64,000 bases of DNA from Octopus sinensis (GCF_006345805.1 NC_043021.1:2046001-2110000); one strand, 5' to 3'. Shown: positions 19,830 through 43,781, counted from the first letter of the stretch. A program made the numbers and translations. The notes: generated from the letters alone by a model not told the origin.

Positions 19830-21210
19830 GGTATTATAAAGTCGTCCGTCTTTACTTTCTGAGTTCAAATTCTGCTGAGGTCAACTTTACCTTTCATCCT
19901 TTCAGGATCAATAAAATAAAGTACCAGTTGAACACTGGGGTCGATGTAATCAACTAGACTCCTCTTCCTAAATTGCTGGCTTTGTGCCAAAATTTCAAAC
20001 CACCACCACCATTATTATTATTATTAAGGCGACAAGCTGACAGAATCATTAGCACGCTGGGCGAAATGCTTATTGGTATTTCGTCTGTCCTTATGTTCTG
20101 AGTTCAAATTCTGCTGAGGTTGACTTTGCCTTTCATCCTTTTGGGGTTGATCAAATAAGTACCAGTTACACACTGGGGTCGGTGTAATCGACTTAATCCC
20201 TTCCCCCAAATTTGAGGCCTTGTGCTTCCAGTAGAAAGGGTTATTATTATTAAGATAGCTAGCAGAGTTGTTTATGCGTCAGACAAAATGTTTAGTATTT
20301 TGTCTCCTTTATGTTCTGAGTTCAGATGCTGACATAGTTGGCTCTGACTTTTTATTCCTTTGGGGGTCAATAAATAAGTACCGTTTAAGCATGGAGATCA
20401 ATGTAATCAACTTACCTCCTCCCCCTAAAATGGCTAGCCCTAACCCCAAAATTGAAACCATTATTATTGAGGTGGTAAGCTGGCAGAATTATTTACTGAA
20501 CTGGACAAAATGCTTTGTGGCATTTCTTCCAGAAGTGGATGTTCTGAATTCAAATTTTGCTGAGGCTAACTCAAGCCTTTCATCCTTTCAGGGTAAATAA
20601 AATGAAGCCCCAGTCAAACACTGGTGTTGGTGTAATCAACTCGCCTGCTCCTCCACATAAATTGCTGGCCTTGTGCCAAACATTTAAAACCATTATTATT
20701 ATGATGATGGGGAATTGTTGGAGCATTTGGACAAATGCCTTGTGGTAATTCTTGTAATTCTTTGTGCTTTAAGTTCAATCCCCATCAAGTCCACTTTTGC
20801 TGTTCATCTCTTCGGGATCAGTAAAATAAAGTACTGGGAGTCAATTTCCCATTTTCCCAAATTTCTGGTCTTTATTTGCTTTTGTTAGAAACAATTCTGC
20901 CGAGATTGGTGATTTTTGCCTTCATCCTTTTGGAGTGGTCTTTGAAATGGGTATCAGTTTAGCAATGGGATTGTTGTGATCGGTCAATCCCCCACCCCCA
21001 GGGCCTTGTGCTTATAATAGGGTTATTATTAATTCCACCAAGGTCAACTTTGTCCAAGTTCGAATTCTCCTAACGTTGACTTTACTTTTCTTCCTTTCGG
21101 GGTTGATAAAATAAGTACCAGTTGAATACTGGGGTTGATGTAATTGACTTATCCCCCTTCCTTGAAATTGCTGGCCTTGTGCCTAAATTTGAAATCATTA
21201 TTATTATTGC
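19830..21210 (+). repeat. Head-to-tail array of ~6-7 diverged tRNA-SINE copies separated by (ATT)n
   Basis: Core gagttcaaatt...gcctttcatcctt...aaataagtaccag repeats every ~200-220 bp. Confidence 0.8.
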
Positions 21211-21593
21211 TTGTTACTGTATTTAGAATTTCATTAATAAATTTCTCATCTTCCTAATTATCAAGAGGAGCATTGTGTACGTGATGGTCTTTTCTTCTTT
21301 CCAATGAAATTTTTTTAGGGAACTAACTTTAGTTTTGTTGCATTGTGGGTATGACTCCCCCCCTGACCCTTATTTCTTTCTCCCTTCATTTGTCAAGCTT
21401 ATCTCTCGGATTTCCAATAGCTGGTTCACTGGTGCTGTTCCAAGCAGAAAACTTTTTTTTTTTTTTTGTTAATTGACTCTGAGCCAAGTAATTTCGTTAA
21501 TTAAAACTCAATTAAGCCATGTCTAATAGCAGCACCATTTGTCACAATTTGGCAGCTACTTATTATTTCTCATCTTACAACTCTCTTTTTCCC

Positions 21594-21803
21594 CCCTTTT
21601 AGCATTCAGGTTACTCTTGTCACACGTAATGCTTATTTATTCACATTGTTTTCAACTAATTCTGCATTATCTCACAGCTTCAAGATTTCAATATGAGATT
21701 GTTTATTTTTAGAATGGCATTGTAGGGTAGGTGTGAGCCCAGATCTGGCCCCAATTTGAACATATAGAACAAGTAGACTATTATTAAAATGCTAAAGGGT
21801 TAA
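21594..21803. mobile_element. piggyBac-like MITE, near full length
   Basis: cccttttagcatt ... aatgctaaagggTTAA terminal inverted repeats. Confidence 0.7.
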
Positions 21804-23535
21804 ATCACTTTTTTCTTTAAAAAAAACAAAACAAAATACTTCAGTCTGCAAATTTCCAACATTGCTAATTTGACTGATTTAATTTAACTTAGGGAATAAA
21901 AAAAAAAAGTATTGAAGTTTTCATCTAGCATATTCTACACAGATTCCTCAATCTTTTTCTTTCTTTCATGTGGTTTTGTAAGTTATCCAGGTTTTAGCGT
22001 TCTGATATTTTCCAAAGACTATCTTTATTGCTTAAGGTATATTGTATAAATAAAAAGAAAAGAAACAGTTTGGACAGTAATTCTCTCACTTTACAAGGAT
22101 TTAATCACAAATATGAATGCTTCTCTCACTGAAGTTTTTATAATAAAAAGGGTTTTTAAATACCCTCCCCCCCTCAAAATAAGGTTTCTCTAAACTTCTT
22201 TCTATGGTTAATTTAGTAATAACATCCTTCATGGTGCAGGCCCAATAATTTTCAATAAAATCAATACTTTGAAACTATGTATCTTTAAAAGAAATTGATT
22301 TAAATCCAATTCTTTACAGCTCTTGCTATTTAGTGTGAGGGCAAGTTTTTTTTTTTTTTTTCCTTTCCCCTGCTAGTTGTGATTGTATGTGAAAATCTAT
22401 TACAGAAGCATCTTGTCTTAAACTTAACCTTTAAACAATTCTATACAAGAGATTAGTGTTTTTTTTTTCTTTTTTTCTTTTTCCTATTTCTTGCTAACTT
22501 TGGTCAGTAACCGATCTATAAATATTTAAATTCTACCAAAACTTCCCTCTTTTTTCAGCCTGTAATTTCTACTAGATCTATATAATTAAAAGCTTCCAAG
22601 TATTCTGGAGTTACATATTTTTTTTAAAAATTGAAACTATTTAAATCTGTTTTTTTTTTTTTTTTTTATTAATCTCTCTCTCTATTAATGCTTTCAAATC
22701 TGGGAGTGAAGGTTATGCAATTCTATTCTCAACCAAAAGTCTAACTTTAAATGTTGTTTTATCGGATGTCTCGCTTGGATTGATGTCTTTCAGAACTCTG
22801 TGACAGTTTGAGTCGAAGTTCAGCGTAAAGCACCCAGTACCCTCCACCACTGTGTATTCCAGAAGCCCCACCCCTACTCCGTTTCCCCTCCGTGATTATT
22901 CAAACCTTATACAAGATACATTTTCAATAAATGTTTAACTTAACTCTCAAATGTACTCCATTTCTCTCCAATTGTATTTTGACTTCTCTACTTTATTTTT
23001 TTAAAATTAAATTTAATGTAATAAACTTTGAATAAAGCCCAGTTCATTCCAAAGAAAGAAAAAAGAAATTGTAAAAGATGCAGATACTGCCTGTTTTGGT
23101 GATGCTAGATAAATTTAGTTCGTGGGTTACAAAGAGGGGAGGTGCTTTGTTTTTCAGCATAATGTGAATATTTCTTAACTTTGGTTGGCCGTGGAGTCGA
23201 GTACTGAAAGTATTTGAGACTAAAACACTAAAAGAAAATGGGGTGGAAACTGATAGCAAAATACACATCCAAATGGTTAAAAAAAAAAAATGTTATTGTA
23301 TATAACGTATTTATTGTCTGTTCACTTTCAAGAAAAATATTACTTTTAACTAATTCTATGAAAGCAGTTCACAGATCTGTTGTCTGCTGAGGAAAATTTT
23401 TTAATGAAAAATTAAAAATTTATCAAGCTATTTTAAAAAAAAAGTTAAAAGTTTTTTCAGAGTATATATTAATACAAAATTGACATTCTTTTCAGAGTGT
23501 ATCATATATATATATATACATATATACATACATAT

Positions 23536-23582
<47 letters not shown>

Positions 23583-26500
23583 ATTTTACAAATTTGTATG
23601 GTTTTGACGATTATGGATTTCTTAATTGGTTTTTAAAAAATCTTAATTGTTGACATCCTGTTAATGTGTGTGTTTTTTTTTTTTAATCATTAGCGTGTGT
23701 GTTTTGCTTTGCATTAGACTTGATTGCTAAAATACATATCAATCTGTATTTGATATCATCATACTTTGAAATGACGACTTGTCTTTTTACATTAAATTTG
23801 TTTCATGATTTCTATTGAAGACTTACTGTGATTGATTTTCCTTTTTTTTTCTTTTTTTTTTAAATATAAATTATGCATATTTTGTGCAGAGTTACAACAC
23901 AACATGCAAAACAAAAAAAAAAAAAAATTCAAAAATCCTAGAAGTTGCCAATTCATTTTAATGAACCATTTCAAAGACTTCTGTAGTAATTATTATTGTT
24001 ATTTAGCTTTGCATTGGATCTAGCTGTAGTTGTCACCAGATACATTAGTCTTTCTGCCAATCTGAAGAAAAAAACCATTTAGAGTCCTATGTGTGTAGGC
24101 CTCATTTCTCCTGCTTCCAACTAATCTAGTTGTATTCATTTCACTGCAGTTGCTTCTAAAGATTATAAACATTGCTATAAATGACTAACACTTTAGATAT
24201 CTCTGATGGTCAGTGTGTGTAGGAGGGTAGAGAGAAGCATGTCGGTTGGAGACCTGTGTTGTGGCTTTGAAAGCTGCTATTTCTAACTTCTACTTTTCCA
24301 TGCTTGCATGGGCGAGACAAAGTTAATTGCAGGAGAACGTCTTCAGGTGGATGCCTTTCCTGTTTCCATGCAAACTAATATTTCCCCGAATAACCAGACA
24401 TGTCCTTGCAGTATATTGGGAATGAACGACACTGCTTGTATGACAGTGACACTCGTTTACAGCTATCATTCAATGTCAACACAGACATACACATGCATGC
24501 TCACATATATACGACAGGCTTCTTACAGTTTCCCCCTCTATCAGAACCACTCATAAGGTTTTGGTTGGCCTGGGGTTACAATAGGCATTTGCCCAAGGTG
24601 TTCAGTAGAACTAAACTTGAAACAATGTAATTGGGCAACAAACTTCTTACCGATGCAGCCATGTCTGATTCTTGACACCAAAGACTGCGATTGTTCCTTG
24701 ACATGAGAGCCTCTGCTATTTAAGCAGAAGTGGGAAGCTCGTCTCATTTGTAGGAGTTCTCCATTATTGCAGTATGTGCTGGCCTTATACTTTTCTACTC
24801 AAGGCACAAAGCCCGAAATTTTTGGAGAGTGGGGGGACAGTCAATTAGATTGACCCCAGTATGCAACTGGTACTTAATTTATCGACCCCAAAAGGATGAA
24901 AGGCAACGTCAGTCTCGGCAGAATTTGAACCCAGAACGTAAAGACACTAAATACTTCTAAGCATTTCGCCTGGCATGCTAATGTTTTTTGCCAGCTCGCT
25001 GCCTTGTGCTGGCCTCTACTTGGCCAAACTTAGAGTACATCAAAGTTGATTTCTGTAAGTTTTTATGATGTGGTTGTCCCTTGTTACCATGTCACTTTGC
25101 TCAGTTTAATATTGCTTTCAAATTTTGGCACAAGGCCAGCATTTCCAAGGGAGGGTCTTAGTTAATTATATTGACCCCAGTACTCAACTGGTACTTATTT
25201 TATTGATTCCAAAAGAATGAAAGGCAAAGTCAACCTCAGCAGAATTTAGATGAAATACCTCTAAGTATTTTGCCTGGCAGGGGCAAAAATTCTGTCATCT
25301 CACTGCCTTCTGCTCAATTTAATATGGCTGAGTGGTTAAAGAAGTTTGCTTCACAACCCCAATGATGCCATATTCAGTCCTGCTGCATGACCTCTTGAGC
25401 AAGTATTTTTACTATAGCCACCAGTCAATCCAGAGTTTGTAAATGAAACCAGACAAACTACGAAACCTTGTCAAATGGATTGCACCTCTAACTCCAAAGA
25501 TCTTGCTTTGATATTTTCTGTCACATTATTTTAATTCCTGGGAATTTCATAAATGGTACATTGGTCTGCTGTTCTTGGCTCCTTAAATATTAATTCAACA
25601 ATTGGATCGGTCAGTTGAATGCTAATCAGAGGACTCCTCATTACTATTTGTTCCTCTTACAATCTAATTAGGGACCCTCTACAGTTTCAGCAGCCTGACC
25701 CAGCTCAAAGCCCAGTTTCCAGAATGAGGTGGGGCAGGGCTGGGATACATCTTTTACTCCTTTCAGTCACTGGACTGCGGTCATGCTGGAATACTACCTT
25801 GAAAGGTTTAGTTGAAAAAATTCACCCCAATACGTTGTTTTTGTTAAAAAATCTGGTACTTATTCTGTTGGTTTCCTGCTGAACTGCTACATTAAATAAA
25901 TGTTCCTTCTCAAGCCATGCCAGGCTCATAAGGGCCGGTTTCATTGGCGTAGAAATTCCCCATCTGGTTAGGATGCTGGTCTGTCACAGAATTACTCATT
26001 TTTGCCAGCTGAGTGGACTGGAGCAACATGAAATGAAGTGTTTTGCTCAAGAACACAATGCATAGCCTGGTCCAGGAATTGAAACCACAACCTTACAATC
26101 ATGAGTTCAACACCCTAACCACTAAGCCATGCGCCTCCACAAACTACTACGCTAAGGGAACGTAAACAAACTAACACCAGATGTCAGTTGGAGGTGAGGG
26201 CAAACACACACACATATGACATATTTCTTTAAGCTTCTGCCTACTGAGTCCACTCACAAGGCTCTGGTTGCCCTGCAGTGGGACTGAACTCAGAACCATG
26301 TAGTTGGGAAGCAAACTACTTCCCACACAACCACTTCTGAGCCTTTGACATTTCTTGAGAAGAAAAGATCAACCGGATGGTCACTGTTTGAAAGTTTTTA
26401 ATCATAATGTTCACTAGATCAGGTCTAAACATTATTGCATACCAGCCACTTTGACATAAGGTAGTAAAATTGGCACGGGGCTAAAGAATTCATGCCACAC

Positions 26501-26704
26501 TTAACCCTTTCGATACCAAACCGGCTCTGGCTCTGTAGTACAAATGTCTTGTTTTCATAAGTTTTGGATTAAAATCTTCCACCAAACCTTAGTCACAATT
26601 TATGTTCCTAACACTAGCTGAATGATAACTAAGTCATCTTATTAAATTTTTTGTTATAAGAAACACAGAGCATCTCAAGAGATATATGGTAATGAAAGAG
26701 TTAA
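26501..26704. mobile_element. Second piggyBac-like MITE family (TTAACCCTTTCGATACC ... GAAAG(A/G)GTTAA)
   Basis: TTAA at both ends. Homologous copies at 41380-42465 (interrupted) and ~42490-42670. Confidence 0.72.
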
Positions 26705-27399
26705 AAGTAATTCCAAGATTAGAGAATTTGGTAGAATGTTCTCTGAACAAACCAATCACAACAAAACTTCCCCCTCTGACTGAGTCCTCATCATGAATAA
26801 AGAAAAAGAAAATGGTAAAATCCATTAAAATGAGTTCAGATGCTTGTCTTCATGTTCTGATTCCATGGTGGTAACTAGCACCATAACATCTCCCAGGATT
26901 AAACTTTCTTTTCAGGGCCCAGGATGAGAAAATATACGAATCATGTGGTTGGTAAAATGTGAAAAAAAAAACATTACATATGATAAACTAAATGCTAAAA
27001 GGTTAAGGGTATGCATGTCTGTGGAACGCTCAGCCACTTGCACGTGAAATTTCACAAGCAGGCTGTTCTGTTGATTGGGTCAAATGAAACCCTTGTCATT
27101 GTTGTACCTGACAGAGTAACAGTGGTTCTGTGGATCATTGACATTTGTAAAGAGAAAAAGGGCATTAACTGTTTCTGCTCAAGCTGGGGCATTTGATCCT
27201 TTGCACGATTAAAATTTAATGGTCATTCCCATAATGAGATTAATTATCCATCAAAAAATAGTGATATTTTCTACCTCAGCAATGCTACTTTTTTCTGTAT
27301 CCCCTATAGAAGATACGGTTTTCATAAAAATATTTCATTCTTGCTCTACAAAGAGATATTTCATGAAATATGTGGCAAAAAAATTAAGAAAATAGGTGC

Positions 27400-27790
27400 A
27401 GGAGATGCTGTGTGGTAAGTAGCTTGCTTACCAACCACATGGTTCCAGGTTCAGTCCCACTGTGTGGCACCTTGGGCAAGTGTCTTCTACTAAGGCCTTG
27501 GGCCGACCAAAGCCTTGGGAGTGGATTTGCTAGACAGAAACTGAAAGAAGCCCGTCATATATGTATATATATATATATGTGTGTTTGTGTTTGTTCCCTA
27601 CCCCCACCATCACTTGACAACCAATGCTGGTGTGTTTACGTCCCCATAACTTAGCGGTTCTGCAAAACAGACCGATAGAATAAGTACTAGGCTTACAAAG
27701 AATAAGTCCTGGGGTCGATTTGTTTGACTAAAGGCGGTGCTCCAGTATGGTCACAGTCAAATGATTGAAACAAATAAAAGAATAGTATCT
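27400..27790 (+). mobile_element. tRNA-headed SINE of a third family (tgtgtggtaagtagcttgc...ggttcagtcccactg...gaaactgaaagaagcccgtc) with extended 3' part
   Basis: A/B-box-like head. Related copies at 24560-24660, 35650-36000, 45790-45960, 50545-50760, 57420-57670 and 60260-60560. Confidence 0.75.
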
Positions 27791-29557
27791 TTTGTCAAAA
27801 GTGCCACTGGGAGGGGGGGAGGTGTCTCTGCTTCTTGCAGCAAGAGAAGAGATTTTTTTTTTGCAAAGCTGTGAAGTAAAACCACTTTTTTGTGCTTAAT
27901 TTTGACTTTTTCTTTTTGTTACACATTTCATGTTTCAGTCATTGGACTGCAGCCATGCTGAGATACTGTCCTGAATTTTTAGTTGAATGAATTGATCCAC
28001 TGTACTAATTCTATTGGTCTCTTTTGCCAAACTTTTAAGTTATGGAGATGTGAAGATGCCAACACTGGTTGTCAAGTGGTAATGAGGAAACAAACACAGA
28101 CACACAACACACATACATCATCGTTTAACGTCCGTTTTCCATGCTGGCATGGGTTGGATGGTTCAACTGGGATCTGGGAAGCCAGGAGGCTGCACCAGAC
28201 CCCAATCTGATCTGGCAAAGTTTCTACAGCTGGATGTCCTTCTTAACACCAGCCACTCTGAGACAAGTACCAGTTGAGTACTGGGTCCATGTAATCGATT
28301 AGCCCCACCCCTAGCTTCAGGTAACGAGCGGGCAGAATCGTTAGCACGCCAGGTGAAATGCTTAGTTGCATTTTGCCCATCTTTATGTCTTGAGTTCAAA
28401 TTCTGCTGAGGTAGATTTTTGCCTTTCATCCTTTCAGGGTCAATAAAATAAGGACAAGTCGAGCACTAGGGTTGATGTGACTGACTTACCCCTTCTTCTG
28501 AAATTGCTGGCCTTGTGCTAAAATTTGAAAGCAATATTAATCTGGCATTTGGAATATAAATCAACAGGAAATTGTGATGGAAGGTTTTAGCTTAAATCCC
28601 TTTAAACACAAGAAGTTTGTATCATAGATGCAGGGGTTGGTGCTAAAAGGGTTAACGACAACTTCTCCCAATTGTTTAGATGTTTAACAAACTTCTTGTA
28701 TCCATCCCTATTAGGTTATAAGCTGTTCTGAAGGAAAAGATTATTGGTTTCAAATTTTGGCACAAGGCCAGCAATTTTGGGGGATGAAAATAAGATTTTT
28801 AGTGGTGGTGGTGGACAAACACAGAAACAAAGACACACACACACACATAATATATATATTTATATACATGTATACATGATAGGTTTCTTTCAGTTTCCGT
28901 CCACCAAATTCACTCACAAGGCTTTGGTCAACTTGAGGCTATAGTTGAACACATTTGCCCAAGGTGCCATTATGCAGTGGGACTGAACCTGGAACCATGT
29001 GGTTGGGAAGCAATCTTTGTATACATATCATCATCATCATCGTTTAACGTCCGCTTTCCATGCTAGCATGGGTTGGACAGATATATATATATATAAATTC
29101 AGGGTGAATACTTGATAAATGTAAGCACCTGTATATGCCAGCTAGTAGCAGAGGTGAGAGGACATATGTATCAAATGAAATAAAAAACAGAACACAAAGG
29201 ATGTCGCGGTACACGTGTTTCAAGCTTTATAAAACAACTTATTCTTACATCAATGTATAATCGACATAACAGATGGTTTAAAGCTCTCTTCAGCCGCATG
29301 CAATTGCTATACCAGACCTGTATCACATTATGAAAAGCCCGAAAAGGAACATTTGATATTATCTATAATGGTAGGTATATTGAGTTTCACTGGGAAAATA
29401 TGTTTGTAAATCTTCATAATCAAATAGGTGTACAGGGTATTATACTGTATCATCAGTCTATATAGCTATATTATAAATATATTAACTGGCCCCGTGCTGT
29501 CAAAAACGATGTCTAATTGTAATATTTTATAAATAAATAAGGTACAAAACCAAATTT

Positions 29558-30924
29558 TTAGTTTAATAATTCTTTTTTTATCAAATTTTGCGTGAAAGAT
29601 CCATTTGCAACTAACATCTCTTGACTGCTTGTTTCCTTCAAAAGAATTTTAAAGTTTTCCTTCCTTTTTATACGACTTAAGGCCACGTAAAGCTCACCGT
29701 GACTAAATACAGGAGCTGGCAAGTAAATACCAACTTTTTCGAAGCTCTGTCCTTGCCATTTGTTTATGGTCATGGCAAAAGCTGGTATCACAGGGAACTT
29801 CTACCTCCTCATATTGAAGGGTAGATCTATTTCACTTGGACGCAGGTCAACTCATGGTATGAAAGCTTTATTTTCTTTCTTACTGCCAAGAATGATTTTT
29901 AGGAGATAAAACCAAAAATCGAGTTCCATTCAGCAAGCCATTAGCAGGGCCCAAATTTCTCAGCAAAACCACAATGGAATTTTTCTTCAGAGCTAGATTG
30001 TATGGGGAGCATCGGAGAATTCAAAAACTCTTCCGGATAATTCATGATATTCTCATTGCTTTCGTCAACCAACAAACACATCAATACTTTGATAGATCTG
30101 TAAGACTCCATCTGGAAGTGATAATATCTTGGTATTCAATTCGAGTGAATCTTTGATTTTTGTAGAAATTTCATCAATATCGCCCTTACTTACTACAGAA
30201 ATGTCTTTGCCAAATATATCTCTTATCAAATTTCCAGACGAAATCATGGTTTCAGGTATTTCTATTAGATTTTCATCTAAGCCCACATCATAGTAACTGT
30301 TCCATTTCCTGTGCTGAGAAGCCATGCATTGAATTCTTCTTGTCCATTTATTCATATATTCCCTGTTAAAGTAAAAATTGTCACATCTTTCCACAGAGGA
30401 GAATATTTGACAGAAGATTCAATTCTAGCAGCATCCGACCCTCTCGGAACAGCTGGTGCAGTTTGCCTAAAGTCTCCGCCAAGAAGGAGACCTTTACCAC
30501 CAAAAGGCTTATGGCAGCTCATTATTTCCTTTAGCAGTAGATCAATGCACCTCAATGTATTTCCTGAAAGCATTGATGCCTCATCAATTATTATTATCAG
30601 GTCAGCTAATTTTAATTCTTCAGAGCGCTGTGATGGAATCTTCATCAGTGATGTAGAATTTTCCAAGATCGGGACTGGGAGCTTAAAGCCATTGTGTACA
30701 GTTCTTCCTTGAGGCAACAGATCAGCCATAATGCCTGTTGTAGCAAATGAGAGAACTCGCTTTCCCTGATGACTCAAATGCGATATCAAGGTATTGTAGA
30801 GGTACATTTTTCCTGTTCCATCAGGGCCATCTAAGAAGAAAAATCTGCTGGGTCGGTGTTCGTTGTCAATAGCTGTGATAATTTGATCAAACACACGACG
30901 CTGATTGTCTGTGAAAGAAGTAAT
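29558..30924 (-). pseudogene. Disrupted PIF1-family helicase half of the Helitron
   Basis: In-frame stops at 30925-30927, 30352-30354, 29852-29854 and 29801-29803. Frameshifts near 30295, 30070, 30010 and 29900. Confidence 0.92.
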
Positions 30925-33903
30925 TTATGCTTCCACTTCAAGGTTGTCCTGGATTTGCTTCACATTCTGGGAATCCGTCAAAGACATATCGTCAATTGGA
31001 AGATGCAACTCTTGGCATGTCAAACCATGCAAGGACAATGTTGTTTCAATTTCTCGTAAAGCCAGTTGTACTGAGATTGTTCTGCTGTGATTTGTAAGGA
31101 AGTCTTCAATCAAGCTTTCCTCAAAGCTGTTGAAGAGTACATCAGGATTGACTGGATTATTGAAAATACAAATGTGTGCAAACAGCTGCCGGAGCTCCTG
31201 TGGCATATTTGTCAATGAAGCCTCTTCTAGGCATCTTCTCCACTCATCATCATTTTGAACCAACTGCCGGCGCTCTGCCGCTTCTTTATAGCTGCCACAT
31301 ATGACGTCATCCACAGTTTTCAGTTCTTCAAAACTTCGAGATCCTTTAACATGCAGCAACAAAAGTCTCATGTAAAACCTCTCTTGATACTTGGGGTTGA
31401 CAGAATACATTTCACTTATGATTTTGTCAGCTCCACGTTGTCTGGGAGTCCACTGCATCATTTTCTTGTTGTAGACATAATGATAAGGAATGTCCGCATA
31501 CAGATATTGTCTTGCGTTTTCATCATTTTGGTTGAGCAAGAACCATGCTGTTAGAGGAGTGTTGTGTTGGGCAGCTCTTTCTAGCGCTTGTCTTTCTTGT
31601 CCCTCCTCAAAATAGACGGGCTGTTCCTGTGGGAGATGAACAGGAAGATGAATAACGGTATGGGATTTGTCATGCATTTTGAATTCAAGCAATCTCCACA
31701 TTCCTTCAGGAGCACTCACATATTTCGCATCTAGAAAATTCTTGATTTCATTGTGTTCGCTGATGCCTACAGTTACGGAATCGTAGCCTTTGTATAAGTC
31801 TTTGTACACATATTTCACAGACCTGATGAAGGTGCAAATGTCTACATTGAGGTGGCAGTTGTATTTGTGACTTAGATATTTGTTATAAGGTTCAACATAT
31901 CGGTTGTCCACTACTTTCTGACCAACGTTTAATGTTGAACCCGGACGTCTTCTGTAGGATGGATAACTATCTTGGTTTGTAAAGGTTTCCTGTTGAAATT
32001 GTTTGGGAAAACCTTTTGAGCAGTTGTTATTTTCCATGCATGGTACATTAGGGTTTTGCTCACCACAAGGACCGTGAATCATAAATTTCTTAACAATTTC
32101 ATAGAGTATTGATTCTGTCTCTGGGTCAGGAATTTCAGCACACACAATTTTGTCAATTCTTTCTGTTGAGTTTGGTTTCTCTTCTGGATGAAATATTAAT
32201 AATAAACGGGCATGTGGTAGTCCGCTCTTTGGAAATTCTATGGTGTAACAATGTGCGACAACTCGGCCAATCACATATCTTTTTGTTACATCAATTACTA
32301 ATTCCTGCAACTTAATACTGAAAACCCGGGCAACTAAATCTGGTCTACTGGAGACTGTTTGACCTGGAAAAAGGTTGTTTTGTATCTCGGGCCAATTAGG
32401 ATTGCATGTCATAGTAAGAAATATATCAGGTGGGCCAAATTTTCTCACAATTGCTAATGCATCTTGGTATTGTTCTCTCATATTTCTTGCTGATCCTGTC
32501 CATCCGATTCGAGCATCTTCAGTATTTGCTGCATTGGTCAAATGGTCAGCAAATCCTTGATGTTGTTCCACTTTCAGATGGTTTTGTTGTGTTCGTATGA
32601 AATTTAAATTGTAAGCTTCAACTTGCAAGTAAGAATCTACAACCCACTGTTGAAAAAGTTTTCCCCCGTTCAAAAGGGGATTGAATTCATTATCCCTTAC
32701 AGCAGTTAAAGATATTTTATGTTGAAGCATTGAAATGTTTTGACGTTGTTGGTCCTCACGGTTTCCAGCCATGTGCGGCTGCCATCCAGGTTCACCGTGT
32801 GGGAAAAACAATACATATGTCATTGGATCAAGTTCTGGGCTCAAGATGTCAAGATTTAGGGTTGGAACATCGGAGTTCCTTGGATACACTTTAAAATCTC
32901 TATGAAATGGTGGTTCACCTTCTTCGTTTCTGAATACAATAGCAATTTCATTGACTGTTGGCAAATTGTATCTCCTTCTGTCGTTAATATGATCTCTGTT
33001 GAATACTAAGTTGACACTTGGCATTTCAATGTTTTCTTCTTGAGCACGCTGTTCTTCTTGTACTTCAATTTCATGAAGTGTTTGAAAACACTGAGCATAA
33101 ACATTGTCCTTAAGAATAATATTAATCAAGTTTTCGAGCACTTCTTGGAGGCAGCCTGAATTGACATGATCCTGAGCTCTTATTTCTGTTGCTTGGGTGC
33201 TGTCTACAACATAAAGTTGAGCATATTGTCTTCGTTTACCTTCATTTGGATAAATATGTGAAGCTCTGTGGTAAATTTGTCCATGCACACGGAAACAAAA
33301 TGGGCCTTTTTCTGGTGGATTCTGCAGTTGAGCACCCATCGAAGTGAATGACAGTGATGAATTATATGACCGAATGTTTTCTTGGAAATTTCTATAATGA
33401 GGATGATTTTGATCAGATAACAATGAAACTAAATATGGTGGAAATTCTCTTCTGATAGGATGTAAAATTTTGCCTTTGTGACAACAATTATTGAAACGTC
33501 CATCTGATGGTTTCTCAGCAGAAAAATGCTTTCCTGAGCAAAACTGGCAAACGGAATCCATATTTCCACAGTTATGAATGTGGACTCCGTTTTCTGAATA
33601 CGTGTAATTATCAGGTATAAAACCTGCATTATTTACCCGGGCAGCTCTCATTGCATTGGCATTTCTTTGCCGTCTTTGAATAGCCCCTTCTTCTGTTTCA
33701 TTTGCAATCCTTTGCAAAATTTTTTCTCTTTGATATTTTCTCCTTGCAGCAGTTTCAAAAGCAGTTTCATTTTTACGGCGATGTGCTTCTCGAATTCTAT
33801 CTTTCTTTTTAATGGCAGCAGCTTTTTCAGCTGAGAGCCTTGCTCTGCAATTCCTCTGTCTTTCTCTCGCTAAGCGACGCTTCCTTTCAACTGCACTCTC
33901 CAT
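30925..33903 (-). CDS. Uninterrupted Helitron Rep-half ORF (~992 aa from MESAVERKRR): basic 23-aa repeats, Cys-rich Zn-finger-like region, HUH-type Rep domain with altered catalytic residues
   Basis: ORF track 30925..34083; homology-like sequence begins at the ATG at 33903. Expression unknown. Confidence 0.6.
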   Translation of the reverse strand: MESAVERKRRLARERQRNCRARLSAEKAAAIKKKDRIREAHRRKNETAFETAARRKYQREKILQRIANETEEGAIQRRQRNANAMRAARVNNAGFIPDNYTYSENGVHIHNCGNMDSVCQFCSGKHFSAEKPSDGRFNNCCHKGKILHPIRREFPPYLVSLLSDQNHPHYRNFQENIRSYNSSLSFTSMGAQLQNPPEKGPFCFRVHGQIYHRASHIYPNEGKRRQYAQLYVVDSTQATEIRAQDHVNSGCLQEVLENLINIILKDNVYAQCFQTLHEIEVQEEQRAQEENIEMPSVNLVFNRDHINDRRRYNLPTVNEIAIVFRNEEGEPPFHRDFKVYPRNSDVPTLNLDILSPELDPMTYVLFFPHGEPGWQPHMAGNREDQQRQNISMLQHKISLTAVRDNEFNPLLNGGKLFQQWVVDSYLQVEAYNLNFIRTQQNHLKVEQHQGFADHLTNAANTEDARIGWTGSARNMREQYQDALAIVRKFGPPDIFLTMTCNPNWPEIQNNLFPGQTVSSRPDLVARVFSIKLQELVIDVTKRYVIGRVVAHCYTIEFPKSGLPHARLLLIFHPEEKPNSTERIDKIVCAEIPDPETESILYEIVKKFMIHGPCGEQNPNVPCMENNNCSKGFPKQFQQETFTNQDSYPSYRRRPGSTLNVGQKVVDNRYVEPYNKYLSHKYNCHLNVDICTFIRSVKYVYKDLYKGYDSVTVGISEHNEIKNFLDAKYVSAPEGMWRLLEFKMHDKSHTVIHLPVHLPQEQPVYFEEGQERQALERAAQHNTPLTAWFLLNQNDENARQYLYADIPYHYVYNKKMMQWTPRQRGADKIISEMYSVNPKYQERFYMRLLLLHVKGSRSFEELKTVDDVICGSYKEAAERRQLVQNDDEWRRCLEEASLTNMPQELRQLFAHICIFNNPVNPDVLFNSFEESLIEDFLTNHSRTISVQLALREIETTLSLHGLTCQELHLPIDDMSLTDSQNVKQIQDNLEVEA

Positions 33904-35323
33904 TATTGAAACCAACCTAAACTCATACGACTTAAAGCCACAAAAAGCAGTCCATGACTTAAAGTTGATGTAAAAACTCCCTAGGCATAAATTCCTTAAT
34001 GTAAATAAAGGACATGTTTTAACCGTTAAATGTGTATTTATAATAAACCTTTCAACCGCGGTCGTTTTATATTCTTGATACACTCAGGCAATAATTATTT
34101 TCTCTAATGAGTTTGTATATGCTTATGTAGATGTGTGTGACTGTGATAATTATTTATAACACAGCAGATAGAATATGGATGGTCAATCAAATTAATACAC
34201 TTGTCAATGTTATCTAATGGTTGTCTTTTGAGATGCCACATCTATCATCGTGTTACTGGAAGAACTCTGGTTCGCACATACAAACATTCACATACTTCCC
34301 ATGTACACACACAGAATTGAAACGCTATTTGGACATTTTTCACCGTAGAATTTCCATCATCTCACAACCAGTTTGCCATCACCACTTCCTTTTTCGGCGA
34401 TCTTTCGTTACAGGAACCGATCTTATGTAAACAATTGCATGTGGTCCAGTTGACGTAAACGGTACTCAAACCGTAAGATCACCCCTTTCTCATTCATATG
34501 TTGTGACGGAGAAAAACACAAGAGTATTACTATAGAAGATTTTTACACCACAAAATCTGATTATAAGCGAATGTGTCAACAGCTGGAATTGCTGTAAATA
34601 GACCAGAGAAAACTGTGCTGATTGCAAACGGGATGTGACTATAAACAGAGGCTGTATAAATGTGTGTGTTTGTATTCAATGATCTGTAATATTACAGATC
34701 ATAGGACGATATGGGACGGAGGCTAAAACAATTGCTGAAGACATATAAAGGTAAATTATAAGTTTCTATTCACCGAACAACATTGTTGAAGGAAGAATTC
34801 AGCGAAAGAGATTTTAGCAGACGTCGGAACACGACAGTGTTGGCCATGATGGTGAATAAACAACTAAAGCCAGCCTCCCAACTCTAGTTTCGAACAAACA
34901 GCCATTGCGTTTCATATCTGTTCGCGTAAAGAGAAAAAGAAAAGCTTCAAAAATGACCCGTAAATATCCATTGTAATATTTAAAATATAAAACGGAGTAA
35001 TTATTTTCAAAATGTGCAGATATTAAAATAATGTCGAACTTTCTTATCGAACTCGATGTAAACTGACAGCTATAACCAGTTTCTGAGCCTTAGTTTCGAA
35101 ATGAATCATTTTGATATTTTAAATGTCATTTTATAATAATTATTGATCCTTACATACCATTTATTATTAATAATTTGAATAGATTAACGACTAATATCGA
35201 TAAAATTGCTATATTTAATAAATGCAGCTATCTGTAATGATTAAAAGTCTTTCTTTGACGATCTTTTACAAAATCTGTATTTATATTTTAGTTGAAACAT
35301 CGATTTTGTTTAACCTCAAAAGG

Positions 35324-35396
35324 GCCCTGATCAGCCCCAGTCAGTCCTGATCAGCCCCAGCCAGCCCCACTCAGCCCTGATCAGCCCTATGATCAA
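35324..35396. repeat. 10-bp-unit minisatellite (tcagccctga / tcagccccag)
   Basis: About seven imperfect units with recurring TGATCA palindromes. Confidence 0.85.
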
Positions 35397-37079
35397 AGGC
35401 CTCACAGCAATAATCATTTCGTTTCGGTTCTGCTTCAAAGGCATAGTGTACCACGGAGTACACCATTCAAAGAATCATTTTTAAGAGACAATATGGTATA
35501 TAAACCCAAGGAAGATTTTGGTGGCTACTTCCAGCAGATGGAAAGGTTTCACGGTTCCCTGTTAGATCTGACTTTATAATCTTTGGATTATCACAGACGA
35601 TTATCCCACGCATATTATAGACATGTTATGCAATCTGCCTGTCTAACACTATCGCTTACTTGTTTCAGTGATTGAACTGCGGCCATGCTGGAGCGCCACA
35701 TTGAAGGGTTTTAGTCGAACGAATCTACCCTAATGCTTATTCTATCAGTGTGTCTTTTACCCGAACCGCTATGGTATGGGGACGTAAACAAACCAATATC
35801 GGTTATCAAGCTGTGGTTCGGGACTACGATACACATACATATGCGATGGGCTTATTTCCGTTTCCGTCTGCCAAATCTATTCAAAAGCTTTGATTGGCCC
35901 AGGACTATAGTAGACGACACTTGTCCAGGTGCCAAATAGTGGGACCGAACCCAGGACTTCACGGTTGGGTAGCAAACGTCTCGCCACACAGCCATGCCTG
36001 CGCCTAATCGTTAAATATTTGAATTTTATTTCTTTCCAAATAAGAAATTTCTAACCGAAACATTTATTTTCTTTCCCCATCTTTCTTACAATAAAATAAT
36101 TTATTCCATTTTGGTAAGAACTAACATTTTTTTTTCTTTTAAAATATGCGATAAAAAATGAATTCCTTTCCTTAAAAGATACTGGTCTAAGGGACATAAC
36201 TCTTTCCCTCTCCGATTTATGGGGAAATAATTGCGAACCAAAGTGACCTGCTAGAAATAACAACCAAATCTTACACAACAGTGGACCACGTCAAATAAGG
36301 ACGGACATTGTAGTTCTAGATATATTTTATATGCTAAGTAGAAAAATAGTAGAGGCAGATGAGAATATAGTTAAGTTTGGAACGTCTTTGATCCTAGGTC
36401 TTGCTCGGTCAGTGCTGAGGTCAAGAATCTCTCGGTCAAGCCAGAGATTCTGGGATGATTTGCCGTAGATTCATTAAAACATAAATTAAAGCCAATTAAT
36501 GCTCAAACCGAAAAAAAAAATTTTTTTCTCGTAATTTTGTAATACAATCGCTTATTTCTCCACCTCCCGTCACTCTTGGTGCGTGAAAACGTTTCCTCTT
36601 GCTTAAACCTTTTATGTCCCAATCCTTCTTTCCTTAGATCATAATTCTATTGGAATCTACTCCTCGCTTATGCTATCAAAATTCTCCAGTCTTCGAGGGA
36701 CTGCAAAGCTTGTTGGTCCTGCCTCTTCCTGTTAACTCAGCAAGTTCAAACAAAAGAGATTAACAAAAGGAATTAAACAAGTCATGCGATAGTTTACTGT
36801 ATTTATTGGGCAAATTGTGGCCCGTGGGACTTGCAGAATGGCAGACCGTATTTCAAGTTGAAAATAACACATCCATAATTTTTTTTAATAGTGTGTCCCG
36901 CTTCTGACAAAAAAAAAAAAAAAGGGGTGCCGATGTCAGCTTTAAAGCAGACTTAAAAATCTTGTCGTTAAGTTCGCGAGTAATGATCCTTTCCCCTCAT
37001 CCCCAAGGCACTACAAAGTGTTTTTATAGTTTTTTTTTCTATTTCATTTTATTTGAAAGAGTGAGAAAGAACATCACTG

Positions 37080-37559
37080 GGCGAAACGCTAACGGCCAAA
37101 TACGACTTTGAATAGAATCCCGGTTTATTTTTGAACGGGGGATTTCTTCAGCGTGTCACCGTCTGCGTGCGGTGAATCGGGAAAATGTTTTCCTTTCTGC
37201 CGCCTTGATAATTACAATGTTACAGAATCATTAACGGACACCTGGCTTCATTAGCAGAATGTGGCGTGGTTTCTGGTGAATTTCCCGCCCGTTTCCGTAA
37301 TTAAATGTATCTTTATAACGTCCAGCAACAGCAGAAACGGACTAAACACACACACATTACACATCTCTTTATATTATTATATTCAGCTCTGAATTGGAAG
37401 CAAAACCTGTTTTAAACCGGAAAATCTCCCCCACTGGGTCCAGTTATGGTATTACGAACATTTCTTCCACTTTGATGAGTGTCAGTTATATTAGTTGACC
37501 GCTACACACCCTAATATTCGGTTAGGTTTACCGCAAACCACAAAGAAAACCCGAGAATA
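37080..37559 (+). promoter_or_regulatory. CpG-enriched probable promoter/5' UTR of METTL14
   Basis: Local CpG enrichment directly upstream of the ATG; TTTCCCGC E2F-like site at ~37281. Confidence 0.5.
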
Positions 37560-37625
37560 ATGAATGAACGACTGAAAGAACTTCGAGAGAGATCTCAGGA
37601 AAGGAAGAAGCTTCTGGCCTTGGCT
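37560..37625 (+). CDS. METTL14: METTL14 exon 1 (MNERLKELRERSQERKKLLALA)
   Basis: ATG to GTAAGT, 66 nt; resembles human [22 protein letters not shown]. Confidence 0.9.
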
Positions 37626-38149
37626 GTAAGTATTTTTAAATCTCATTAGTTCCAAGCTCTGTCTTACAGGTTTTAGCTTTGTTTTGCAATAAACCTCAAA
37701 AATCCTGTCTATTGGAGATCTGTATTTGAAGGATGAGAAACCTGGAAATTTGCGAACATTTCCTGCATTGCAAGAGAAACGAAGTGGTTTTGATCAAAAA
37801 TTGAAGCCAAGATGCAGACATAAGTCGCTAAGAGGCAACCGCAACTGTTGTAATTGTCTTCTAAAATAGGGCACAATTTACTGTTCATTTTACGGACAGA
37901 ATATTGTATCATCGTTTGCATTAAAGTCCCCAGTTCTTTGTTTTATGGACTTCGGTGAGACTGAATCCGGAGCATAACTGGTGTGACGGAATACTCCGGT
38001 TCCGGCGTCGTTCCTCTATTTTGCTACATACGACCCATATAGTAATAATAATAAGGTGAAAGTAAAGAATACGTGCCCCCGGTGGTGAAGGTTTACGGTT
38101 AGGGGTCTTATTTCGCCGAAAACCGGTGGTGTACGTATTCATTACCGCT

Positions 38150-38675
38150 GCCTAATAATAATCCTTTCTATTCTAAGCACAAGGCCTGAGGTTTTGTGGG
38201 GAGGGGACTAATCGATTTCATCGACCCCAGTGTTTCACCGGTACTTAATTTATCGACCCTGAAAGGATGAAAGGCAAAATCGACCTCGGCGGTATTTGAA
38301 CTCAGAATGTTAAGACGGACGAAATGCCTAATTCTTATAGTAGAATAGATTGATAAAAGTAATAATAATAATAATGGATTTAGAATTTGGCCTCGGCTAG
38401 CAATTTTAGTGGGAGGGCTTCAATCAATTTGACCTGTTTACAAAGTCAGAAAACAGCACAGCTCCTTCCATGACTTTCAGAAACATTTTTTCACGCTAAG
38501 AGTTGCTGAAGTATGGAACAAACTGCCGCCGCCCCATTGCAATACCTTGCTGGTAATTATTTTATTAATCTTGAAATGATTAAAGTCAAAGTTGACCGTA
38601 ACAGAATTTGAACTCAGAACGAAATACTGCTGAGCATTTTGCCCACCGTGCTAATGATTCTGCCAACTCACTGCC

Positions 38676-38721
<46 letters not shown>

Positions 38722-40050
38722 TAATAATAATTTCAAATTTGGCCACCAGAGCAGCAATTTTGGGGGAGGGGATGTGTTGGTTACATCGACCCCAGTATGC
38801 AACTGGTACTTATTTTATCGACCCTTAAAGGATGAAAAGGTAAAGCCGACCTCAGCAGAATTTGAACTCATAATGTAGCATCATGCGAAATGCTGCTAAG
38901 CATTTTGTCCACCGTGCTAACGACTCTGCCAGCTTGCCGTCTTATAATAATGATAATAATAATAATAATAATATAATAATAATAATAACAATAATAATAA
39001 TTTCAAATTTGGCCACCAGAGCAGCAATTTTGGGGGAGGGGATGTGTTGGTTACATCGACCCCAGTATGCAACTGGTACTTATTTTATCGACCCTTAAAG
39101 GATGAAAAGGTAAAGCCGACCTCAGCAGAATTTGAACTCATAATGTAGCATCATGCGAAATGCTGCTAAGCATTTTGTCCACCGTGCTAACGACTCTGCC
39201 AGCTTGCCGTCTTATAATAATGATAATAATAATAATAATACTATTATAAGCACAAGGCTTTAAATTTTGGGTTAGGGACCAGCCGATTACATTGACCCTA
39301 GTGTTCAACTGCTACTTCTTTTATCAACTCCGAAAGGATGAAAGGCAAAGCTGACTTCAGTGTTGTTTGAACCCAGCATATAAAGAGCGAGAGGAACTCT
39401 TGCTAAGCATTTTATCAGACATGCTAACAATTCTGCCAGCCTGTCACCTTAATGATAATTATTTGGGAGGAGGGAGGGAATTAATCATTTACTTTGACCC
39501 CCACACTGCTGAACTGATGCCCATTTCATTGAGCCTGATATCGGTGGAATTTGAGCTCAGAATGTAAAGACAGGTGGAATGCCACTAAGCATGTTGTCCA
39601 GCTTGCTACTTTAGGCCCAAGGGTCTAATATTTTGAGGGAGGGAGCTAGTTGATTACATTGACCCCAGTGCTTGATTAGTACTTATTTCATCAAACCCAG
39701 AAGGATGAAAGGCAGAATTAACCTCAGCAGAATTTGTTCTCAGAACATAAAGACAGACAAAATTCTGCAAAACATTTTGTGCAATGCTTTAACAATTCTT
39801 ATTTCTTTACTACCCACAAGGGGCTAAACACAGAGGGGACAAACAAGGACAGACAGATGGATTAAGTCGATTATATCGACCCCAGTGTGTAACTGGTATT
39901 TATTTAATTGACCCCGAAAGGATGAAAAGCAAAGTTGACCTCAGTGGAATTTGAACTCAGAACGTAATGGCAGATGAAATACGGCTACACATTTCGCCCG
40001 GTGTGCTAACGTTTCTGTCAGTTCGCCGCCTTCGAAGCCTTAACAATTCT
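38150..40050 (-). repeat. Array of ~8 tRNA-SINE copies on the minus strand in METTL14 intron 1, with (AAT)n spacers and one perfect 270-bp tandem duplication
   Basis: Repeated ggatgaaaggcaaag..gacctc..cagaatttgaactcag core. Confidence 0.82.
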
Positions 40051-40589: not shown

Positions 40590-41127
40590 TCACTTTAAAG
40601 TTGCTAAAATAATATTCGGGATGCCTTTATCTCTACTAAGTATAGATGCAGATGTGTTACCTAAGATTAATTTTGAGGATCTGATCAAAGACTTTGCAAT
40701 TCAGAAAAGTAGGAGGAAACTTTTCAAATCTGAATAAAATTGGAAGTAGACAAAAATAAACATTATCATTTTCCATTATTTACATTTGACGGATATTTGT
40801 CCTCATCTTGTTTGTTGTTAACATAACGTTTCGGCTGATATACTCTCCAGCCTGATATACCTTCAGGCTGGAAGGTATATCAGCTGAAACGTGTTAACAA
40901 CAAACAAGATGAGGACAAATAACCGTCAAATTTAAATAATGCACATAATTCCTCATCTCTTAACTGTATTAATATTTTCCATTTTACTGTTATTTTCTTT
41001 TTTCATTTTGAAAAATATAAATTTATTTGATGGTTTATTATTGTTCATATATTTTGTATAACATATATATGAGGGTACCAAAATCTTTTAAGTGCTTATG
41101 GCCTCTACGGGTCTTGATGAGGCCCTG
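40590..41127 (+). mobile_element. hAT transposon 3' remnant (C-terminal dimerisation motif and right end)
   Basis: Translation LSLLSIDADVLPKINFEDLIKDFAIQKSRRKLF resembles the hAT C-terminus; ends ...gaggccctg (CAG-type terminus). Confidence 0.65.
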
Positions 41128-41260
41128 CACTCCCCTTAACACCCCTCATGTTGTGACTCCTTTCACTATTTCACCATCTACACTACTACATTAACGTCTC
41201 TTCCACTGTGACTCCTCCCACCACAGCCACTGTTGACCAAACCATGATATTCTTTTGCAG

Positions 41261-41337
41261 CTGGGAGCTTCCGGTCCAGAAGGATTAAAGACAATTCTAC
41301 ACAGTGATGTTAACGCTGAGAAGAAGCTTCAGGACAG
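41261..41337 (+). CDS. METTL14: METTL14 exon 2 (LGASGPEGLKTILHSDVNAEKKLQD)
   Basis: ttttgcAG / GTAAGA; starts LGA as in vertebrates; ends in phase 2. Confidence 0.88.
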
Positions 41338-41503
41338 GTAAGACCTCTACTAATCACTGCCCGCTTAATCCATTAGCATTTAACCCTTTTGTTACCAATC
41401 CAGCTGAAACTGGTCCTGGCTCTGAGTACAAATGTCTTGTTTCCATAAGTTTTGAATTAAAGTCTTCCACCAAACCTTAGTCACAATTTATGTTCCTAAC
41501 ATT

Positions 41504-42346
41504 GGTTGGCATCCTTTTTGTCTCGGGAGACAATGGAGTTGTGCATAAAATAGTCCAGTCTGGCTTTTACATTTCATGTCCTGATACATTTCCTGCTGTG
41601 GCTGTGTAGTCCTATCCTGGACAAACACTCCCTCTGGCAGGTACCGCAAATGTAGCGAAGACTGTCCCTGGCTGGTTGTAATGCCATAGTTTCTTGTTGA
41701 CGTCTCTTCTTGTCTTTCCATTTCTCCTCCCTCTCTCTGTCACTCCTTTGTATTCCCTCTCTTACGGTACGTTGCCGGCAACTGCTTCCCAACTGCTAAT
41801 ATTGATGTTGCAGGCCTTCATGTCCCTTTTGCAAACATCCTTGTAACGTAAGAATGGTCTTCCCACAGACCTAGTACCCCTAGCAAGCTCTCCGTAGAGT
41901 ATGTCCTTGGGGATTCCGCCATCTTTCATACGGCTAACATGCCCAAGCCATCTCATACGTCTTTGTGTGAGGAGTGCAAACATGCTTGGTATTCCTGCTT
42001 GCTTGAGGACATCTTTGTTGGGGATATGATTCTGCCATTTGATGCGGAGGATTTTCCGGAGGCAGCGCAGGTGAAAGATGTTTAGGCGACGCTCTTGGCG
42101 TGTGTATAGCGTCCAAGTCTCACTTCCATACAGTAGAGTGCTAAGTACACATGCCTGGTAGATCTTCATTTTCGTGGTCTTGGTCCGCTTATTGTTGTCC
42201 CATGCCCGTTTGGAGAGTTGGGCCATCACAGCAGCTGCCTTGCCAATGCGTATATTGAGCTCAGCGTCAAGGGATAGGTTGTAGGTGACGGTAGAGCCAA
42301 GATAGGTAAACTTCTCCACCTCTTGTAATCTGTGGTCTCCAATATG
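41504..42346 (-). mobile_element. 5'-truncated RTE (BovB-like) LINE, RT C-terminus plus terminal Zn-finger-like motif
   Basis: FTYLGS, KIYQACVLSTLLYGSETW, RRMRWLGHVSRM, GRPFLRYKDVCKRDMK, C..C.R.CLSRIGLHSH. 15-bp target duplication tatgttcctaacatt at 41489-41503 and 42347-42361. Confidence 0.93.
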
Positions 42347-43551: not shown

Positions 43552-43585
<34 letters not shown>

Positions 43586-43693
43586 ATATATATATAGTGC
43601 GTGTGTATATATATATATATATAGTGTGTGTCCATATATTGTTTAGATCTTTGGTGTTTCTTGATTCTTAATGTATTAATTTTGTTCCTGAAG

Positions 43694-43781
43694 CGCCAGC
43701 GGGAGCAGCAGTTTGAACTATCCTTCCCGTCTCACTACATCCAGCGAAACTTCTGTAGCATTGGACAACAACAAGAACAAG
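43694..43781 (+). CDS. METTL14: METTL14 exon 3 (SASGSSSLNYPSRLTTSSETSVALDNNKNK), low-complexity
   Basis: ttttgttcctgaAG / GTGAGA; 88 nt, phase 2 to 0, the only candidate seen that joins exons 2 and 4 in frame. Confidence 0.75.

Follow-up and report, generated by a model that had tools for sequence, protein, structure and literature searches.

A Helitron Rep reading frame kept beside its decayed helicase in Octopus: a candidate transposase-derived host gene

On the minus strand of a 64,000-nucleotide stretch of the Octopus sinensis genome (GCF_006345805.1 NC_043021.1:2046001-2110000, called the window below) lies an old, immobile, single Helitron insertion. Its front 2.98 kb has probably been retained as a protein-coding gene, and the remainder has decayed. 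The kept part is a Rep-derived open reading frame (ORF), and the decayed part encoded a PIF1-like helicase. Comparison with the orthologous sequence of a sibling species supports selection for what its motifs predict to be a nuclease-dead, helicase-less Rep-derived protein, and the ORF is thus a candidate for a transposase turned host gene. Domestication of transposases from cut-and-paste DNA transposons is well documented. For the Rep of Helitrons, the literature searched contains no established case that involves a protein-coding gene; nearest to one come Hel_c35, an intact Helitron proposed to have been co-opted as a bracovirus segment (PMC5714489), and Paramecium Helitrons with intact ORFs, and a broad review of exaptation names Helitrons only as a source of regulatory DNA. 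If the present reading is true, HUH/RepHel proteins can be recruited like other transposases.

The Rep-derived ORF (30925..33903; this and all other features of the element are on the minus strand unless stated) starts with ATG and comprises 992 codons followed by TAA, uninterrupted both in the window and in Octopus vulgaris; a preliminary description of this DNA had likewise reported about 2.98 kb with neither stop nor frameshift. It is the longest ORF of the window by a factor of four, the runner-up encoding 230 amino acids (aa). Pfam Helitron_like_N (PF14214) matches it at aa 400-569 (E=3.5e-46), Pfam PIF1 (PF05970) matches the first helicase fragment downstream (E=3.2e-44), and the ORF is collinear over aa 9-979 (E=1.6e-270) with Helraiser (PDB 7LCC), an experimentally studied transposase reconstructed from a bat Helitron. 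The element is thus a Helitron RepHel by descent: a Helitron_like_N Rep is followed in the same frame by a PIF1-like superfamily 1 helicase, collinear with Helraiser and with 52 relatives. The TAA that closes the ORF (30925..30927) is common to O. vulgaris and in frame with the helicase remnant, and both the reading frame and the alignment to relatives continue straight past it.

Beyond this TAA the picture is one of decay. Lesions in the PIF1-like helicase pseudogene (29561..30924) were mapped by alignment to intact relatives. The in-frame stops are the TAA at 30925-27, which ends the Rep ORF, a TGA at 30352-54 (family NMR, here NI-stop), a TGA at 29852-54 (family IPR, here IP-stop) and a TAG at 29801-03 (family RRRQ, here RR-stop), and the frame changes four times, 0>2>0>1>2, at ~30284-30300, 30071/72, 30006-30012 and 29892/93. 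The roughly eight lesions noticed earlier are therefore exactly 4 stops and 4 frameshifts, and the origin suggested for three of the stops (CGA to TGA twice, CAG to TAG once) agrees with the relatives: both TGAs stand at family arginines and the TAG stands at a family glutamine that is still CAG in O. vulgaris. The Walker A motif is also degenerate (GPDGTGKM, 30805..30828; family consensus GPGGTGKT). All eight lesions fall in the last 31.5% of the coding length, which has a probability of 1e-4 if lesions are placed uniformly; the clustering is, as had been suspected, unlikely to be due to chance. When the lesions of both species are summed, P is 3e-5 for 9 frame-breaking lesions and 3e-6 for 11 stop or indel events.

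How old is this contrast, and is it real? The best non-self protein match to the Rep ORF is an O. vulgaris gene model, whose locus (L002, GCA_951406725.2) is flanked upstream by the same gene. When this locus was compared with the O. sinensis window (CM016883.1, GCA_006345805.1), it proved collinear with 38527-25273 over 13.3 kb, with further blocks beyond, and the shared neighbour has a 481-aa product. A search for the orthologous locus, which had been proposed as a check, thus found it present and syntenic in the sibling species with an intact Rep: the O. vulgaris ORF has the identical length of 992 codons, the same TAA, the same altered motifs EFPKSGLPHARLL and KYVYKDLYKG described below, and the helicase stops and frameshifts. 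O. sinensis and O. vulgaris split ~2.5 million years (My) ago (PMC10700109). Because both species have them, seven of the helicase lesions predate the split, as do the insertion itself and the changes in the motifs, and because the lesions are found in two independent assemblies, they are not assembly errors, which had been named as a possible refutation. The helicase continued to decay thereafter: O. sinensis has gained the TAG and shows an 18-bp indel difference, and O. vulgaris has a 21-bp indel difference and a 1-bp insertion that shifts the C-terminal frame. The Rep ORF has taken zero indels and zero stops in either lineage. Between the species, the 1346 bp of the helicase differ by 3 indels and the flanking DNA by 4.8-6.7 per kb, whereas the 2979 bp of Rep differ by 0. 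If Rep had accumulated indels as the helicase did, 6.6 would be expected, and finding none has a probability of 1.3e-3.

Substitutions between the two species, 61 in the Rep ORF, point the same way, with 26 synonymous and 35 nonsynonymous changes and 0 stops. A permutation null, which held the counts of transitions (at CpG and non-CpG sites separately) and of transversions at their observed values and randomised their positions, gives an expectation of 16.3 synonymous, 41.7 nonsynonymous and 3.0 stop-creating changes. Under this null the probability of at least 26 synonymous changes is 0.004 and that of no stop is 0.04 (joint 3e-4), corresponding to a ratio of nonsynonymous to synonymous rates (dN/dS, omega) of ~0.49. 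The same permutation applied to the helicase pieces gives 8 synonymous changes versus 8.1 expected and an omega of 0.96. By codon position, the differences are distributed 11/18/32 in Rep (chi-square P=0.0036) and flat, 7/11/9, in the reconstructed frames of the helicase. Likelihood-ratio tests (LRT) of omega=1 under GY94/F3x4 yield an omega of 0.435 for the whole ORF (P=0.0027, 2dlnL=8.98) and of 0.31 for the N-terminal domain, aa 1-460 (P=0.0016), and estimates not significantly different from 1 for the nuclease domain (0.64), the post-nuclease part (0.52) and the helicase pieces (0.72). Purifying selection acts on Rep as a coding sequence, most strongly on the N-terminal domain; the helicase half, the control within the same element, cannot be told from neutral (omega about 0.7-1.0). 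Separate estimates for the two halves, as the preliminary description had advised, therefore place Rep at about 0.44-0.49, significantly below 1 by both permutation and LRT, and the helicase near neutrality.

A longer record is kept by the columns that are at least 80% conserved among the 52 relatives. Such family-conserved residues are retained at 54/57 positions in the N-terminal domain, 77/88 in the nuclease domain, 39/45 in the post-nuclease region and 82/103 in the helicase, and the N-terminal domain differs from the helicase with P=0.01. As the figures of 77/88 and 82/103 indicate, conserved residues have disappeared from the nuclease domain at almost the rate seen in the pseudogenised helicase, but no stop or frameshift has come with them. 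With ~3.4% of substitutions creating a stop, 4 stops in 448 helicase codons correspond to roughly 9% neutral divergence; from this lesion density and a pairwise divergence of 2% per 2.5 My, we infer an insertion age of ~20 My, with a wide interval. This agrees with an octopus Helitron burst at about 25 My, recent Helitron insertions being also reported in O. vulgaris (PMC13282606). Over ~20 My, a neutral ORF of 2976 bp would be expected to gather about a dozen stops.

What the selected frame encodes differs from a working Rep at the residues that matter for catalysis. The motifs were aligned with those of the 52 full-length relatives and Helraiser, and a census was made of 106 relatives with recognisable motifs. 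The HUH motif (32200..32238) reads EFPKSGLPHARLL where the family has EFQKRGLPHAHIL: R566 (codon CGT, 32206-32208) stands in place of Helraiser H595, so that the second HUH histidine is lost and the motif is H-A-R. The two-tyrosine motif (31786..31815) reads KYVYKDLYKG where the family has KYLYKYIYKG, with D702 (GAC, 31798-31800) in place of Helraiser Y731, giving Y698...D702. HxH is found in 104 and Y..Y in 102 of the 106 relatives, and H-A-R and Y..D occur in the octopus protein only. Furthermore, at 32479..32514 (ARIG^WTGSARNM, the caret marking the site) an in-frame deletion of 8 residues has removed the family motif (I)ILPSSF before GSARNM. Both catalytic losses and this deletion had been read correctly from the single sequence. 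In Helraiser, transposition is abolished by double mutation of H593 and H595, by mutation of Y727 or Y731 singly and by mutation of the Walker A lysine; Y731F ends cleavage of single-stranded DNA (ssDNA), and the protein without its N-terminal 489 residues does not bind ssDNA (PMC4778049). An autonomous Helitron has both HUH histidines, two catalytic tyrosines (Y-x3-Y) and an intact helicase with Walker A, all of which the octopus copy lacks. Judging from these motifs, the octopus protein is not a transposase in any working sense.

The ORF divides into three parts. The N-terminal domain (aa 1-460, 32524..33903), where constraint is strongest, matches residues 1-489 of Helraiser, its ssDNA-binding domain. 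It includes a Lys/Arg-rich basic stretch resembling a nuclear localisation signal (NLS) at aa 8-46 (33766..33882), so described by analogy with the Helraiser N-terminus, and a zinc-finger-like Cys/His motif, HNCGNMDSVCQFCSGKHF...NNCCHKGKI, at aa 110-146 (33466..33576), which is conserved with Helraiser. Next comes the HUH nuclease domain remnant (aa 461-716, 31756..32523), open in frame and carrying the altered catalytic motifs. The post-nuclease region (aa 717-992, 30928..31755), corresponding to what precedes Walker A in the Helraiser helicase domain, has the lowest substitution density within the ORF. An in-frame GTG upstream would lengthen the ORF to 1052 codons; this extension (33904-34083) shows 7 differences in 180 bp from O. 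vulgaris, mostly amino-acid-changing, and was treated as non-coding leader. A Pfam CagS match in the tail of the ORF (E=0.008, below the family cut-off) was dismissed as noise.

Several observations weigh against reading the ORF as a retained gene. The dN/dS signal depends on 61 substitutions between two sibling species ~2.5 My apart, the domain-wise tests were several and some of them post hoc, and the nuclease and post-nuclease parts are each, taken alone, indistinguishable from neutral. Total divergence is no lower in Rep (2.05%) than in the helicase (2.01%), and therefore the signal has in part the appearance of too many synonymous changes and not of too few nonsynonymous ones, unless neutral change here runs closer to the 3.6-4.3% of the flanks. 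No orthologue was found in the other cephalopod proteomes of the database, which could mean absence, decay or missing annotation, and no transcript-derived protein was seen in the protein databases searched; the O. vulgaris gene model is an ab initio prediction by EVidenceModeler on a repeat-masked genome. Absolute divergence was set aside as a test of constraint because it is uninformative where the local rate ranges from 0.6% to 6% per kb and the totals of Rep and helicase are equal. With equal totals and local rates varying tenfold, constraint is visible in the kind and place of the changes and not in their number.

The equal totals, the lack of significance outside the N-terminal domain and the modest number of substitutions would also suit a dead Helitron evolving neutrally, in which Rep has escaped lesions by luck, or is the younger half as a result of in-frame recombination with, or gene conversion by, a more recent copy before the split, and the low dN/dS is sampling noise. 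Possible donors exist among the octopus Helitron families with recent insertions (PMC13282606). Nevertheless, we consider such a neutral relic unlikely. The joint probability of 3e-4 for so many synonymous changes and no stop comes from a null conditioned on the mutation spectrum, and luck would have to account as well for the absence of indels from Rep and for a lesion distribution with P between 3e-5 and 3e-6. A young active donor should have intact HUH and tyrosine motifs, which are here uniquely destroyed, and the nuclease domain has lost family-conserved residues almost at the pace of the helicase. The two halves are equally depleted in CpG (about 0.5), which, together with the continuity of frame and homology across the TAA, argues against a younger Rep half. 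In the protein databases searched, no donor-like copy was found.

Another alternative, which seems to us quite improbable, accepts selection at the locus but not on the 992-aa protein. The O. vulgaris gene model (P0002) joins aa 115-485 exactly to aa 760-992, and thereby implies a putative in-frame intron of 822 nt (31627..32448, GTGAGA ... TTCATCTTCCTGTTCATCTCCCACAG) that would remove aa 486-759, so that the dead nuclease core is skipped and the N-terminal DNA-binding domain is joined to the C-terminal region. The GTGAGA donor and the acceptor, a polypyrimidine tract of 20-plus nt followed by CAG, are identical in the two species, and the skipped segment shows the weakest constraint. However, the intron may be an artefact that simply spans the Helitron core masked before prediction, and we treat it as a lead rather than as evidence; the acceptor-like sequence encodes the family-conserved LPVHLPQ, and coding constraint alone could yield it. 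Moreover, we estimate that, since the element inserted, a segment that had always been intronic should have collected about 6 stops or frameshifts, and it has 0.

That the ORF still serves transposition, as a working transposase subunit or as a transposon-encoded factor selected among transposing copies, is barely credible in spite of its very strong homology to the active-type RepHel Helraiser and of recent Helitron activity in Octopus (PMC13282606): other residues stand at the positions of H595 and Y731 and the helicase is in ruins, and Helraiser needs both activities to transpose (PMC4778049); the copy is fixed at the orthologous site in two species, with no paralogue detected in the protein databases searched; the canonical 3' hairpin with a CTRR terminus was not found within ~650 bp downstream of the helicase end; and, on population-genetic reasoning, selection among transposing copies cannot give dN/dS below 1 between fixed orthologues. 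Autonomous Helitrons run from 5'-TC to CTRR-3' and have a subterminal hairpin at the 3' end; the scan of these ~650 bp found AT-only mini-palindromes and no GC-containing hairpin, and there were no further copies from which to define the ends. Exact-protein look-ups for the locus returned one contig each. A search of the protein database with the full ORF returned only the O. vulgaris model above 54% identity, the next match being 51% identical, and a search with aa 744-992 gave no cephalopod match and others of at most 58% identity over most of the query, with up to 66% in short stretches. Truncation to Rep alone as a recurrent Helitron strategy was also considered and rejected: Rep-only proteins in the database end at scattered points (octopus coordinates 665-1088) and keep HxH and YY, as befits fragments or ordinary copies.

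Returning to a retained gene, what might its product do? The best-supported reading, by analogy with Helraiser, is that it would be a non-catalytic DNA-binding protein derived from Rep, because the H595 and Y731 equivalents and the helicase are gone and conservation and constraint are both highest in the N-terminal domain. The predicted 992-aa protein would possess an N-terminal domain with NLS-like and zinc-finger-like elements, a dead but structurally retained HUH domain and a pre-helicase segment, and would end before Walker A. Its most likely role would be to bind Helitron ends, or similar ssDNA or hairpins, and so to compete with active transposase in the manner of truncated-transposase repressors; alternatively, it may have been recruited to a host function. 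The preliminary description had proposed selection for a nuclease-dead DNA-binding protein, either a new host gene or a trans-repressor of Helitrons; the part concerning selection has stood, and DNA binding and either role are inference only, the choice between the two roles purely so. The full proposal can be put forward only tentatively, as one that we hold to be rather more likely to fail in some part than to stand entire: a host gene derived from a Helitron RepHel, which would be, as far as we have found, the first case of protein-coding domestication documented for this superfamily, encoding a nuclease-dead, helicase-less binder of ssDNA or hairpins that is selected in the Octopus vulgaris complex, possibly acts as an anti-Helitron repressor and shares a bidirectional CpG-island promoter with an MT-A70-family gene.

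Domesticated DNA-transposase genes include SETMAR, THAP9, the PGBD genes, FHY3/FAR1 and DAYSLEEPER (partly PMC8616336), and the P-element KP product is a truncated repressor that an active family produces from mobile copies with internal deletions. The octopus locus resembles the former in being a single orthologous locus, immobile, with an ORF kept amid decay, dN/dS below 1 and a DNA-binding part more constrained than the catalytic one: it is syntenic in two sibling species and single-copy in the protein databases searched, its ORF is kept with an omega of 0.44-0.49 (P about 0.003-0.004), and mobility has been lost with the catalytic residues and the helicase, leaving the copy at a fixed orthologous position. 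SETMAR and its like are of DDE/RNase-H-type or other origin, have been conserved for tens to hundreds of My and have known expression, whereas the octopus ORF comes from a Helitron HUH Rep, has been followed over about 2.5 My and is described here from its sequence. With KP it shares a truncated protein that keeps a DNA-binding N-terminus, as far as the sequence tells, and has lost its catalytic residues, and a proposed competition for transposon ends. Unlike KP, it is encoded by a fixed, single-copy locus, and is a candidate repressor by analogy.

Among Helitron and HUH proteins, a close counterpart is the Helraiser/Helibat RepHel (PDB 7LCC; Grabundzija et al., 2016, PMC4778049), with which it shares the N-terminal basic and zinc-finger-like domain, the HUH fold and the pre-helicase segment; in the original octopus element a PIF1-like helicase likewise followed in frame. 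It departs from Helraiser in the arginine for the second HUH histidine, the aspartate for the second tyrosine and the 8-residue deletion, and the octopus copy has its helicase cut before Walker A and shattered, its termini unrecognisable and its position fixed at one locus. Hel_c35, an autonomous Helitron turned bracovirus segment in Cotesia vestalis, likewise has a Rep/Hel ORF that is intact at low copy number and has been proposed to be co-opted, but the element is whole, and its Rep and helicase activities are the proposed benefit (PMC5714489), whereas the octopus copy has a ruined helicase and a dead nuclease. Endogenous viral Rep genes, derived from circular ssDNA viruses or parvoviruses and retained by eukaryotes (for example PMC3198968), are also HUH Rep ORFs fixed in host genomes, some of them open; the octopus Rep is of Helitron and not viral lineage, and viral Reps lack the N-terminal Helitron domain.

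If the reading is true, nature would have supplied in this protein a separation-of-function variant with which end recognition by Helitron transposases could be studied. Transposable elements abound in octopus genomes, Helitrons have been active there recently, and a host-encoded binder of Helitron ends would be a testable candidate for cephalopod transposon control. A single insertion in which one half is constrained and the other provides a built-in neutral control would also make a clean teaching case.

Upstream of the ORF, a CpG-island-like block at 34001..39000 (5 kb; CpG observed/expected 0.8-1.1 versus 0.2-0.65 elsewhere) separates the Rep ATG (33903, minus strand) from a plus-strand neighbour that starts at 37560. 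Its composition makes it a plausible candidate for an unmethylated, possibly bidirectional promoter region shared by the Rep ORF and this divergent neighbour. Together with the automatic gene models, the block is a circumstantial pointer to expression of the ORF. The neighbour is a multi-exon gene with a 481-aa product in both species' records, extending from 37560 to past 43903 and probably to beyond 52265. An ORF at 51657-52265 on the plus strand matches Pfam MT-A70 (E=2.2e-20) and is probably its last exon, on the same strand; if so, the neighbour would be a gene of the N6-methyladenosine (m6A) methyltransferase family placed head-to-head with the Rep ORF, which may be transcribed from the CpG-island-like region that the two share.

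Some minor features of the region may be added. Over the helicase remnant, an antisense ORF (30311-30712, plus strand, 133 aa) without a family match is present in both species because their DNA is 98% identical here, and we treat it as due to chance. Just 3' of the remnant, O. vulgaris has 22 additional bp (ATGGACGGATTTTCGAAGTCCA; window ~29445, L002 ~14140), and the sequence 3' of the element is clearly free of constraint. The helicase pseudogene (2.0%) diverges more slowly than its immediate flanks (3.6-4.3%), for which we offer no explanation. Divergence between the two species is generally uneven along the compared locus (window 21000-38500), being 0.6-0.7% per kb at 21000-22999, 4.5-5.4% at 24000-26999 and 5.5% at 36000-36999. 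Positions 1-3000 of L002, which match the window piecewise at ~40800-43700 in an intron of the MT-A70-family gene, contain very long TA/CA microsatellites and can be aligned between the species only as fragments. Finally, an interspersed repeat of 150-450 bp occurs on both strands at ~19850-20300, 38720-39200, 49818-50050, 54582-54811 and 59966-60099; it is 70-85% identical to stretches of the O. vulgaris locus, is unrelated to the Helitron and is probably a short interspersed element (SINE) or similar to a miniature inverted-repeat transposable element (MITE).

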